Sequence record: OR844650.1 | Reading direction: 5' to 3' (one strand) | Length of the DNA stretch: 64,000 bases | Shown: in pieces, positions 3,077 through 5,977 of the stretch | Layout of the letters: every line of letters begins with the position of its first letter | How positions within the stretch are numbered: position 1 is the stretch's first letter | The notes under the pieces: model-generated | What the model was told of the DNA's origin: nothing | What the model saw: the letters and a program-made list of their open reading frames with translations, nothing else | Database searches by the model: none | Position numbers and translations under genes: made by a program

Positions 3077-3913
3077 ATGGCTATGAATCCACTTGCTAAG
3101 TACACTAAAATTGAAGAGATCAGTACTAAGTTAGTTACAAACGGCGTTATTCCTTATAAAGAAGGAGTTCTAGGTCCAAAAGGTGTCAAATGTGGAGTTT
3201 GTGCACGTAGTGCACGTGATGAAATGACACTTAATACCCCCGATATGTTACTAAACGGAGATGCAGTATCCCGTGTTATTGAAAACTGTGTTCCTAATGT
3301 AATTGACGCTGATGAGTTGTATGTAAATGACGTTGAAATGCTTCTTATTGCTATTAAAGTTGCTTCTAAAGAAGAAACATATGATATTAACGTTGTATGT
3401 CCTGAATGTGAAAAAGAAGGTCGATTTGAACGTAATCTATCATATCTTCTTGAAACTGCACAAGCATTTGAAGAAATCCCATCAATTGATTTAGATAATG
3501 GACTACGTTTAGAATTTAGACCACTGACATGGAAAGAATATTCATCGTTTGCTGAACGCATGTTCAGTGAGCAGCAGAAGACTAAGTTTCTTGAAACTGC
3601 TGATATTGATAAAGATGAAAAAGTAAAAATATTTTCTGAAGTATTTGAAAACATGGCTCAACTTAACTTCGATATGATTGGTGGAGTTATTGCAAAAATT
3701 ATAACACCAGATGGTGATGAAGTAGTTGAAAAAGAATTTATTAATGAATGGCTTGGACAACAATCGAAGGGAGTACTTAAACTAATTCGTGAAAAAATGG
3801 ATGAAGTACTTGAAATTGGTGTATCTCATAGTATGGAAGTAGAATGTGATGGATGTAATCATCAATGGGAAATTGATGGACTAAAATATGATCCTAGTCA
3901 TTTTTTCGAGTAA
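3077..3913 (+). CDS. Baseplate hub assembly chaperone (T4 gp26/gp51-like)
   Basis: TARDEMTLNTPDMLLNGDAV...VNDVEMLLIAIKVAS, CPEC and CDGC motifs, C-terminal HFF; strong RBS GGAG. Confidence 0.7.
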   Translation: MAMNPLAKYTKIEEISTKLVTNGVIPYKEGVLGPKGVKCGVCARSARDEMTLNTPDMLLNGDAVSRVIENCVPNVIDADELYVNDVEMLLIAIKVASKEETYDINVVCPECEKEGRFERNLSYLLETAQAFEEIPSIDLDNGLRLEFRPLTWKEYSSFAERMFSEQQKTKFLETADIDKDEKVKIFSEVFENMAQLNFDMIGGVIAKIITPDGDEVVEKEFINEWLGQQSKGVLKLIREKMDEVLEIGVSHSMEVECDGCNHQWEIDGLKYDPSHFFE

Positions 3914-4122
3914 TGCTTCTCCAGTCATCTCCTGAAGAAATACAAGAAGTACTGAAGGAGATAGAACTGAATAAGTCAGAAATCAAAAATGCACTAATGG
4001 AATGTTCTGTATATATGGATAACATTGACTATGGAACACTCCTTAATATGCCATTAATAGATAGAGACTTATTAGTTAAGTCTTTTAATAAAAAAATTAA
4101 AAAACAAAACGAGAAGCACTAA
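3913..4122 (+). CDS. Small baseplate hub assembly protein (gp51-like in T4-related phages)
   Basis: 69 aa, TAATG overlap with the upstream gene; 'LLNMPLIDRDLLVKSFNKK' resembles tail-chaperone C-terminal partners. Confidence 0.55.
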   Translation: MLLQSSPEEIQEVLKEIELNKSEIKNALMECSVYMDNIDYGTLLNMPLIDRDLLVKSFNKKIKKQNEKH

Positions 4123-4132
4123 TTTTCATATA

Positions 4133-4159
4133 GCCAGCACATTGTTGCTGGTTTTTTTT
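4133..4159 (+). terminator. Intrinsic terminator
   Basis: GCCAGCA/TGCTGGT stem followed by a T run, just after the 4122 stop. Confidence 0.8.
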
Positions 4160-4377
4160 GGTTTTAAACTACAGAATTATTTGAATTGAATTACGAAAGG
4201 ATTAATTTTAATATTATTGGATTCATCTAACTCATTTCATTCGTTAGCTGAAGAATATTCGTTACTACGTAACTCATATTCATTTAATTAAATTAATTAT
4301 AAAGAACTTTAAAAGATTTAATACTTGACGGGATTTGTTGAGGACATTTTCATCCCCCCGCAGGGGAATGAAGACAA

Positions 4378-4832
4378 TAAAAAAGAGACAATGAAGTCTC
4401 TATTTCTTGACGCTGATGGTTTCAGCATTTATTGTATTGCGAATTTCTTAAAAATATATTAAGAACGAAAGCGGGTTGCTCTGTTTCTCTCTATCGCAGT
4501 CATGTGCAACGGTCGTCAGTCTTAATCATCCTGACACTCACCTGAAAGTCTATACAATCAAACTTCAGGCTGTTTATTAAAATCACTTAATAAACTCCCT
4601 TAGCAAATCTGGTAAGGTGCGATCCTTATATGTCTATCTAGGAACTCTCTGTATGCTTATCGGAGTTCTTTATTGAGCCGCATTGCCGTGAGGGGTTCAA
4701 ACTATGCCCACATCTAACGGGTTTCTTTTGCTCATCGCACTGTTGAACTGCTCATCTGCCATCTACATTTTCGATAGGATCAGGTTCTAATTTATATGCA
4801 TTTCTGCATTCAACAGGATTGTCATTACTACA
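4378..4832 (-). ncRNA. Candidate ~450-nt structured non-coding RNA of unknown family
   Basis: Upstream TGcTATAAT promoter, downstream AGAGAC/GTCTCT hairpin + T6, no ORF with an RBS, and more than 10 helices including a GAAA-tetraloop hairpin (see findings). Confidence 0.6.
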
Positions 4833-4838
4833 ACAAAC

Positions 4839-4868
4839 ATTATAGCACCATTTTTAAAATCTTCCCAC
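4839..4868 (-). promoter_or_regulatory. Promoter GTGGGAAG-N16-TATAAT with extended -10 (TGc)
   Basis: Minus strand reads GTGGGAAGattttaaaaatggtgcTATAAT; same architecture as the sites at 10559 and 54534. Confidence 0.65.
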
Positions 4869-4916: not shown

Positions 4917-4948
4917 AAAAAAACCAAGTAACAAAACATTACTTGGTT
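4917..4948 (-). terminator. Intrinsic terminator after the homing endonuclease gene
   Basis: 10-bp stem AACCAAGTAA/TTACTTGGTT followed by a T run on the minus strand. Confidence 0.8.
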
Positions 4949-4960
4949 CATAAAAACTAT

Positions 4961-5917
4961 TCAATAATTTATATTTTTTGATATGAAGTCTTTTATAATT
5001 TTAATGTGGTCATCTGAATACTTTATTCTAAGTAAAGTAATATTATTATCATAACAATACTTATTCTTAATTTCATCATTTCGTTGTTGTTCAGCTAAAC
5101 CTTCTTCTCCACCGAAGTATTCTATTGGTTTGAAGTGTTGGATACCATCATATTCTATTAGTAGATTAAGTTCAGGAATATAAAAATCAAATGGTAAATG
5201 ATTGATGTTTTTACAACTATCAAATTTCTTTTCCATTTCAAACATTATATCACACGTTTTTAAAAAATTCTGAATTTCAATAACAGGTTTTGATTTTAGT
5301 TCTTGGTCTGAACAAACTGGACACCCTTGTTTTCTATGATAATGCTTAGTAGCTAGTACGGTGAATTCCCCATGTCTCTTACATAATGGTGTAATGGTTT
5401 CATACATGCCATTATATTTTGTATTAGAGTAATCATAATTATCCATGTGTATGAACTTACAATCTTCAAAGAACACATCTTCTGGAGTTCTCTTCTTTAA
5501 TCCATTTTGAATTTTGGCACATTCAGGGCAACCTTGTCCAGATAGATGATTACTAACTACTTGATTAAATTCACCATGACCTTTTTCTTTGCATATAATA
5601 GTAATCTTTTCTGAACGAATGTTAAAAAACACTTTTGAGTAATCATACTTATCACCATGAACTTCGGTAGCTTCAGTGAAGAATGACCCCAGAGATTTTT
5701 TAGACTTTCGTTCTTTCTTTGCAATATCAGAACAAACTGGACAACCTTGTTTTGCAGAAATGTGTTTATTAGGAACTACTGTGAAGTCACCGTGAATGTT
5801 ACACGTAACAGTTATTGGATGGTGTGCATTGACATATATTGTTTTATTGTATGTGTAAATACTACCATGAATATTCATTGATTTATCTATGAATTGTTGT
5901 TGTGTAATTTTAGCCAT
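4961..5917 (-). CDS. Free-standing putative homing endonuclease: three Zn-ribbon repeats plus a C-terminal Vsr/DUF559-like (EDxHD-type) nuclease
   Basis: Three ~70-aa repeats (HG..YDY.K..Y......I.C..HG.F.....H....GCP.C) and C-terminal LPFDFYIPELNLLIEYDGIQHF. Start moved to ATG 5917 because GAGG lies 9 nt upstream. Confidence 0.75.
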   Translation of the reverse strand: MAKITQQQFIDKSMNIHGSIYTYNKTIYVNAHHPITVTCNIHGDFTVVPNKHISAKQGCPVCSDIAKKERKSKKSLGSFFTEATEVHGDKYDYSKVFFNIRSEKITIICKEKGHGEFNQVVSNHLSGQGCPECAKIQNGLKKRTPEDVFFEDCKFIHMDNYDYSNTKYNGMYETITPLCKRHGEFTVLATKHYHRKQGCPVCSDQELKSKPVIEIQNFLKTCDIMFEMEKKFDSCKNINHLPFDFYIPELNLLIEYDGIQHFKPIEYFGGEEGLAEQQRNDEIKNKYCYDNNITLLRIKYSDDHIKIIKDFISKNINY

Positions 5918-5977
5918 TCTTGTGTACCTCACAAAACTTTTTAATATACATTATTTACAGAAACAGGACAAAACGCT

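Follow-up and report, generated by a model that had tools for sequence, protein, structure and literature searches.

We analysed a 64,000-nucleotide (nt) stretch of sequence record OR844650.1 (hereafter the window), in which an earlier note, made from the letters alone, had marked positions 4378–4868 as an uncharacterised large, structured phage RNA encoded on the minus strand. Judged from the sequence and its homologues, this locus is the gene for a conserved, strand-specific, pseudoknotted non-coding RNA with its own promoter. The proposal agrees with the covariation, the strand asymmetry, the invariant promoter and the absence of Rfam matches, and all three roles that the note had considered (scaffold-like, regulatory or replication primer) are compatible with the evidence. 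The locus is one of four paralogous loci in the genome, which the earlier note had not seen.

The locus and its transcription signals

The region is 100% identical to that of Escherichia phage ECO103 4-12-1 and ~98% identical to those of 121Q and PBECO4, which belong to the genus Asteriusvirus of RaK2-like jumbo myoviruses. The gap described as gene-free is indeed devoid of open reading frames (ORFs) between 4123 and 4960, and all six frames are full of stops. On one flank lies a gene of 69 amino acids (aa; 3913–4122), which itself follows a baseplate-hub gene, and on the other a minus-strand ORF of 323 aa for an HNH homing endonuclease, followed by endonuclease VII. The HNH endonuclease gene (phrog_559; 4961–5932, minus strand) adjoins the RNA promoter and is absent from 121Q. 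The transcription signals and units of the locus are as follows.

4862..4867, minus strand: −35-like hexamer TGGGAA, 17 nt upstream of the −10 box; family consensus GGGACA/GGAACA in the copy alignment
4839..4847, minus strand: extended −10 promoter TGCTATAAT, of the form TGnTATAAT that precedes all full-length IMG/VR copies
4378..4833, minus strand: terminated RNA isoform of ~455 nt, predicted from promoter, terminator and fold (z = −3.1), with a predicted start at ~4831–4833
4324..4838, minus strand: conserved family unit of 515 nt, from just 3' of the −10 box to the tail CGUCAAG, used in alignment A1
4378..4401, minus strand: intrinsic terminator AGAGAC-UUCAUU-GUCUCU + U6, with the stem at 4384–4401 and the U-run to 4378; present in about half of the family
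4921..4949, minus strand: terminator of the HNH homing-endonuclease ORF, from the terminator scan, insulating the RNA promoter
4132..4163, plus strand: terminator of the convergent 69-aa gene, bounding the RNA locus

The promoter, the terminator and the insulating endonuclease terminator had each been proposed from this one copy, and all three were recovered, the terminators in a scan that gave five terminator-like sites against 0.3 expected. The −10 box TGnTATAAT lies upstream of 45 of the 45 full-length copies extracted from IMG/VR (one of them reads TATACT), and every copy starts with a GGGACA/GGAACA-like −35 element, a 17-nt spacer and this box. In 121Q, promoters of the class GGGACA-N17-TATAAT recur at 12 exact sites, which all share one strand. 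Sites of the form GGGACA-N17-T(A/G)TAAT in this genome (e.g. at 5189, 5264, 101440 and 321900) precede structural genes and a sigma-factor gene, and judging by the motif this looks like a phage-specific promoter class.

Conserved fold of the RNA

The minus strand folds with a minimum free energy of −111.5 kcal/mol, better than dinucleotide shuffles (z = −3.1; z = −1.8 for the plus strand). These z-scores alone are modest, and the weight of the evidence comes from the homologues, decisively from covariation among 41 full-length copies. These copies (alignment A1) were analysed with RNAalifold and an all-column-pair scan and then with a curated helix model. Of the 63 pairs predicted by RNAalifold, 39 carried compensatory changes, and the column-pair scan added three pseudoknots. 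The curated model comprises 86 pairs in 18 helices, and 96.4% of its cells are paired, compared with 77.5 ± 0.4% in the shuffled control, where none of 500 shuffles matched the observed value. Both sides changed in a compensatory manner in 64 of the 86 pairs. The covariation score was 0.508, whereas it reached at most 0.099 when the partners were slid by 1–3 columns, a control in which only 36–45% of cells were paired. Paired columns contained 183 G·U cells and 27 A·C cells, and because G·U outnumbers A·C, the RNA corresponds to the minus strand of the window; promoter and U-run are likewise found on that strand. Phage UE-S1 (Asteriusvirus) differs from the window copy by a swapped patch over P14–P16 in which every pair is compensated and one hairpin is inserted.

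A protein-coding gene or pseudogene was ruled out by the stops in all frames and the lack of a conserved ORF: no reading frame is conserved across the copies, the median longest ORF is 38 aa, and 16% of gap runs are multiples of three. The only early ORF of the transcript has 12 codons, as had been described. A small ORF after the GC-rich hairpin described below (MKMSSTNPVKY) was also rejected, as its frame is not kept between copies. GenBank records PP886230, PQ390715, PQ330092, OR699282 and others carry 2–4 automatically annotated 'hypothetical protein' coding sequences across the RNA gene. These are almost certainly spurious, and recognition of the RNA gene corrects them.

The alignment describes an RNA of two domains (P1–P8 and P10–P17) with at least three pseudoknots and invariant joining sequences. 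Near-invariant blocks run through the core (CGAAAAYGUAGA, GAUGAG, GAAACCCGU, CACGGCAAURCGGC, GAUAGAYAUAU, UAAGGGA, GACCGU, UAGNGAGAAAC..AACCCGCUU, AAUU and CGUCAR), and the hairpins between them vary in length and sequence. The elements, in the coordinates of the window, are listed below.

4740..4816, minus strand: P1, long-range helix, CUGUUGAA (4809–4816) with UCAACAG (4740–4746)
4797..4808, minus strand: P2, hairpin UGCA-GAAA-UGCA with a GNRA loop; compensatory changes in 5 of 5 pairs
4756..4783, minus strand: P3, hairpin with a bulge and the conserved loop GAAAAUGUA; compensatory changes in 7 of 8 pairs
4674..4734, minus strand: P5 (UGAGC/GCUCA) around P6 (CCGU/ACGG), with conserved joiners AAAAGAAAC and CAAUGCG
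4642..4668, minus strand: P7, hairpin GAACUC/GAGUUC; all pairs covary
4613..4628, minus strand: P8, hairpin UAAG/CUUA, with invariant GAUAGACAUAU before it and invariant UAAGGGA after it
4572..4595, minus strand: P9, a simple 9-bp hairpin in the window copy; in most other copies a larger hairpin with loop UACAAUAUAG
4541..4570, minus strand: P10, hairpin GCCUGAAGU/ACUUUCAGG with loop AUUGUAU (4552–4558)
4552–4558 with 4431–4437, minus strand: pseudoknot PK2, the P10 loop AUUGUAU with AUACAAU, 115 nt downstream
4514..4536, minus strand: P12, hairpin UGUCA/UGACG, from the curated covariation model
4475..4510, minus strand: pseudoknot PK3, GUUGC (4506–4510) with GCAAC (4475–4479); 100% paired
4438..4498, minus strand: P14 (UGCGA/UCGCA) around P15 and P16 (UUCUUAA/UUAAGAA), from the curated model
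4412..4426, minus strand: P17, hairpin GCUGA/UCAGC, just 5' of the first CGUCAAG; in other copies in the shifted register GACGA/UCGUC

P5 and P6 are 100% paired, and P5 covaries at four of its five pairs. The 3' strand of P1 sits in the loop of P4, a 3-bp helix (4749–4751 with 4737–4739) that itself covaries; alignment columns 56–142, 57–141 and 134–147 all covary. As P1 and P4 cannot both form fully, alternative folds are suggested. PK2 has seven pairs, six of them compensated, and is 99.6% paired. The GCAAC strand of PK3 lies in the loop of P15 (GAGAG/CUUUC, 4487–4491 with 4467–4471), and the column pairs of PK3 include 479–511 (CG 24, UA 15, AU 1, GC 1) and 478–512 (GC 35, AU 5, GU 1).

Most of the helices that had been drawn from the single sequence reappear in this model. 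Nine of them carry compensatory changes, namely CUGUUGAA/UUCAACAG, the GAAA hairpin (found just as described), GAACUC/GAGUUC, CCUUA/UAAGG, the 9-bp stem, CCUGAA/UUCAGG, GUCAG/CUGAC, GUUGC/GCAAC and UUCUUAA/UUAAGAA. The pairing of GUUGC with GCAAC holds, although its nature is that of a pseudoknot into the GAGAG/CUUUC hairpin loop. GCUGA/UCAGC forms a hairpin, but one conserved only in a shifted register. The alternative helix GAUCCU/AGGAUC is weak (74% paired), and GUGCGAU/AUCGCAC, which is not conserved (56% paired), was a chance match.

The hairpin with the conserved loop UACAAUAUAG (A1 columns 340–400 and 530–565) is inserted in the majority of copies at P9 and in some at P16, and its loop contains AUACAAU, the sequence of the 3' strand of PK2. 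This loop could compete for, or kiss, the P10 loop AUUGUAU, perhaps between molecules.

Conservation extends past the terminator, itself an optional insert that is missing from about half of the copies, including copies C and D of 121Q. Three elements lie 3' of its position.

4349..4372, minus strand: GC hairpin UUCAUUCCCC-UGCG-GGGGGAUGAA, 3' of the terminator; in 41 of 41 copies
4324..4337, minus strand: tail CAAAUCCCGUCAAG; CAAAUCYCGUCAR in all copies, its CGUCAR repeating the CGUCAR before the terminator
4227..4281, minus strand: second module, made of hairpin GAAUAU-GA-GUUAC..GUAAC-GA-AUAUUC (4253–4281) with GA/GA internal loops and hairpin CUAAC-GAAUGAAAUGA-GUUAG (4227–4247) with loop GAAYGNARUGA

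The GC hairpin varies only from C-G to U-G, as expected for an RNA on the minus strand. In 121Q, the hairpin and tail occur at the four elements and nowhere else, and the idea that they form an independent DNA site was rejected on this ground. Further 3', many copies have a TAUAAAGUAC-like motif and then the second module, whose loop GAAYGNARUGA and covarying stems follow the element in phages and in the bacterial islands described below. Its stem reaches at least 4 bp in 25 of 32 distinct sequences, compared with a mean of 5.2 when partners were shuffled. In 121Q the second-module hairpin is found only after copies A and B, and the module may belong to a longer transcript or constitute a small RNA by itself. 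Since structure is conserved past the terminator, the conserved unit measures ~600–650 nt. The 'discrete ~450 nt' RNA of the earlier note is thus retained as one predicted isoform, but the unit does not end at the terminator, with conservation running to 4324 and on to ~4227.

Copy C of 121Q and its orthologues in eight other loci have a hairpin and T-run directly after the −10 box, and the predicted start falls within or just before the 5' arm of this hairpin. From this arrangement, the hairpin may terminate read-through from upstream while sparing transcripts that start inside it.

Copies in phages and bacterial islands

BLAST with the core (4317–4802) matched 72 phage records, all RaK2-like. 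The matching phages infect Escherichia, Salmonella, Klebsiella, Erwinia, Yersinia, Cronobacter, Pectobacterium and Serratia, and two were deposited as Xanthomonas phages. Core identity between genera was 67–77%. Every RaK2-like jumbo phage examined has the RNA, which occupies four places per genome in Asteriusvirus, five in most other RaK2-like genera and two in the Alcyoneusvirus records; RaK2 itself has a complete, more diverged copy. In 121Q, whose whole genome was read, the four copies lie at 90.3, 192.8, 247.5 and 326.6 kb, all in one orientation, each in an unannotated gap, with a mutual identity of ~70%. Across genera the copies stand at syntenic sites. Another unannotated 2-kb gap of 121Q (135194–137161) holds no copy of the RNA. 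HNH endonuclease genes lie within ~1–1.5 kb of copies B and D of 121Q. Two pattern scans of IMG/VR found 52 loci, among them the 45 full-length copies, and a third pattern found ~70 further copies in metagenomes and eight in bacterial genome assemblies.

The eight bacterial assemblies contain a full homologue, including promoter, GC hairpin, tail and second module. They include Serratia fonticola (a complete chromosome), Serratia sp., Enterobacter chinensis, Silvania, Buttiauxella and Enterobacteriaceae metagenome-assembled genomes, and 2 of 5426 complete Escherichia coli genomes likewise carry such a homologue. Each island carries one copy in a small integrative element, adjoining the integrase, which is a large serine recombinase in some islands and a tyrosine integrase in others. 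After the RNA there usually come a gene for a CI-like S24 repressor, on which the RNA converges, a Ner-like regulator, proteins of 286 and 138 aa, a small resolvase and variable cargo; the 286-aa protein could be assigned to no family, its homologues all being 'hypothetical'. The cargo comprises DarT, an ADP-ribosylglycohydrolase and a UvrD-like helicase in E. chinensis, and DUF4326, DUF488 and a dual-OB protein in E. coli, while S. fonticola has two ParB-like genes beside the RNA. Islands of this family, among them those of E. chinensis and E. coli NZ_AP027515.1 (beside ffs), measure ~10 kb where both ends are visible. We found no published description of an island family carrying this RNA.

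The islands sit between ppdD and nadC, beside rof and tilS, beside ytfL or beside ffs. The possibility that the RNA is their integration target was rejected, since integrase families, chromosomal sites and relative orientations all differ; because the chromosomal sites differ, the RNA is island cargo rather than an attachment target. In a tree of the copies, the majority of those from islands group in a single clade that also holds a distant phage's copy, and the E. coli island copy is nested in a phage clade, which implies at least two transfers. None of the 72,556 plasmids in PLSDB matched the RNA.

The genomic setting of the copies bears on two explanations that need no trans-acting RNA. 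One is a giant 5' leader or conditional terminator, in which the fold would respond to a signal and thereby govern whether transcription passes on into the GC hairpin, the second module and the early genes downstream. Copies of the B, C and D types have a conserved same-strand gene 40–190 nt after the element, encoding an ADP-ribosylglycohydrolase, a DNA methyltransferase, phrog_15843 or phrog_16210, which are early-type genes, and the optional terminator is placed upstream of conserved RNA structure. However, at the window copy and at every A-type copy the downstream neighbour is a convergent gene and no gene follows on the same strand, and the island copies likewise converge on the repressor gene, so the element does not always stand upstream of a same-strand gene as a riboswitch or leader would. 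The paralogues also differ in their downstream genes, no riboswitch was matched in the Rfam searches, and we know of no riboswitch of such size. We regard the leader explanation as improbable.

The other denies the locus any function as RNA and sees in it a relic, a non-autonomous mobile DNA or a repeat that binds proteins at the DNA level. The element is multi-copy, part of it was labelled repeat_region by the annotators of UE-S1, CGTCAR direct repeats flank the terminator-hairpin segment, some copies have HNH endonuclease genes nearby, and it has been exchanged between phages and islands. Against this, the compensated pairs and the excess of G·U over A·C reveal selection on RNA pairing, the promoter is invariant, and the copies, with ~70% identity and syntenic positions across genera, are too old to be recent insertions. 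An explanation at the DNA level is, in our view, highly improbable.

Relation to known RNAs and possible role

Searching the whole window with Rfam 15 (cmscan at the gathering threshold) gave no matches; the families covered include ROOL, GOLLD, HEARO, OLE, raiA, RNase P, tmRNA, 6S, group I/II introns and hammerhead. At permissive thresholds, the RNA region returned only chance-level small-RNA matches (E ≥ 0.3). Rfam 15 likewise had no match inside the element in 10 other phage copies or in seven island loci, and ARAGORN found no tRNA or tmRNA gene between 4000 and 5100 of the window. Two apparent resemblances were dropped: a hammerhead-like CAGAUGAG...GAA, whose key positions vary (GAUGAG or GUUGAG), and the RNase P-like motifs ACGACCnnUGCA, ACAGAGCAACCCGC and AGAAACCCGUUAG, neither of which had covariance-model support. 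Our literature searches found no paper describing the family and no RNA-seq study of a RaK2-like phage. The RNA family is apparently undescribed, with no match in Rfam 15 or in the papers searched, and is a new family within a known kind, the large structured RNAs of phages and mobile elements.

Within this kind, the closest likeness is to ROOL and GOLLD, which share the size of several hundred nucleotides, the many helices and pseudoknots, carriage by phages or mobile elements, and a stand-alone transcript (here predicted). In contrast, the present family matches neither of their Rfam models, occurs in phages of Gammaproteobacteria rather than in Firmicutes or rumen settings, is not located beside tRNA genes and is multi-copy within one genome. 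The phi29 pRNA, a single-copy RNA of 174 nt that works as a multimer with phage proteins, is also a phage-encoded structured RNA, and the window copy is near the portal gene; however, the two RNAs have no similarity and the three further copies lie far from structural genes. The jumbo phage PA5oct, a distant relative, has four ORF-free transcribed non-coding RNA loci, one of them 451 nt long and accounting for ~5% of phage reads (PMC7318152). These loci resemble the present one in being ORF-free, but the RNA-seq-supported ncRNA001 and ncRNA002 have no homology to it.

We favour the reading that the locus encodes an early, trans-acting folded RNA, to which we give about an even chance (roughly 0.5) on the sequence evidence. 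Host sigma-70 RNA polymerase would transcribe the RNA from the extended −10 promoter early in infection. From the window copy, most transcripts would end at the terminator (~455 nt), and read-through products would include the GC hairpin and tail as well (at least ~515 nt). Its three-dimensional fold would then let the RNA act in trans, as a protein scaffold or decoy or as a catalytic or self-assembling RNA, and islands may use their own copy to hijack or titrate a phage-specific partner. Action in trans is preferred because the unit comes with a promoter of its own and, in about half of the copies, with a terminator as well, because invariant loops and multiple pseudoknots are typical of partner-binding or catalytic RNAs, and because dispersed paralogous RNA genes are common. 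As the RNA is restricted to RaK2-like phages and to islands in their hosts and is found on no plasmid, the partner is likely to be phage-specific rather than a universal host machine.

Several observations weigh against this reading. The family is known here from its sequence, and the transcript start and 3' end are predicted. In about half of the copies the core is followed by no terminator, and conserved structure runs 150–250 nt further, so the product may be longer or part of a leader. A tblastn search of 121Q with the island proteins found no homologue and thereby identified no partner. The PA5oct RNAs ncRNA001 and ncRNA002 gave E = 4.4 in nhmmer and contain no family motif, and therefore are not homologous. 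Moreover, dispersed, co-oriented and individually retained copies would fit a position-tied role in cis as well.

The foremost role of the latter kind is a cis-acting replication element, with a transcript that primes an origin as in the case of ColE1 RNA II or of the T4 R-loop origins. Through its folding, a long-lived RNA–DNA hybrid would arise near the G6/C4 hairpin and the AT-rich stretch after it, and an island copy would let the phage replisome replicate the island. The four to five dispersed copies, in one orientation and each kept at its syntenic site across genera, suit an origin, as does a promoter class common to other phage genes. Helices that covary yet exclude each other (P1/P4, and the P10 stem extension/PK2) are reminiscent of the folding switch in RNA II, with which the RNA also shares a length of ~500 nt, a sigma-70 promoter, a G-run near the 3' part and an element in which no encoded initiator protein was identified. 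The G-run hairpin is invariant and is followed in copy A by DNA of 22–25% GC, although the intrinsic terminator intervenes between core and G-run in about half of the copies, the window copy included, which sets them apart from RNA II. Further differences from RNA II are the lack of a sequence or Rfam relation and the much stronger loop conservation. No opposite-strand promoter-like site, of the kind that would make an antisense RNA I, was common to more than 19 of 41 copies even under lenient criteria, and the PLSDB plasmids are without the present RNA.

The comparison with T4 ori(uvsY) and ori(34) is similarly divided. T4 UvsW removes origin R-loops, and genes for a UvsW-like helicase, RNase H and a T4-type replisome are present in 121Q; both kinds of genome have several promoter-bearing non-coding loci. 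To our knowledge, however, a T4 origin requires nothing more than a promoter and an unwinding element, and its RNA lacks a conserved fold, whereas the present RNA has one and has no homology to the T4 origins. With three pseudoknots and invariant loops, its fold is unusually elaborate for a primer, and we know of no primer RNA nearly as elaborate. Also in keeping with an origin, no replication gene was recognised among the islands examined, one of which has the two ParB-like genes beside the RNA, and the islands and 121Q have no protein in common. GC skew has no inflection at the copies, a weak and uninformative test. Taken together, we consider a replication primer possible but rather unlikely.

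The most novel proposal that we make, and only tentatively, is a new class of large, multi-pseudoknotted functional RNA that acts as a ribozyme, as an assembly made of RNA alone or as the core of a phage-specific machine (e.g. for replication initiation). RaK2-like phages would need four to five specialised copies of it, and small defence-carrying islands of Enterobacteriaceae would have captured it at least twice to parasitise or block these phages. Large, intricately folded RNAs of bacteria and phages are rare, and every one found so far has led to new biology (RNase P, group I/II introns, OLE, ROOL and GOLLD). The present family is well supported by covariation and occurs in cultivable E. 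coli phages (the record of phage Sharanji gives E. coli K-12 MG1655 as host), making it directly testable. Its presence in both lytic jumbo phages and defence-carrying integrative islands suggests a link at the level of RNA, by hijacking or mimicry.

In several genera the gene right after the B-type copy encodes an ADP-ribosylglycohydrolase, and the E. chinensis island has DarT together with a glycohydrolase. This co-occurrence may be a coincidence or may reflect a link to counter-defence against DarT.

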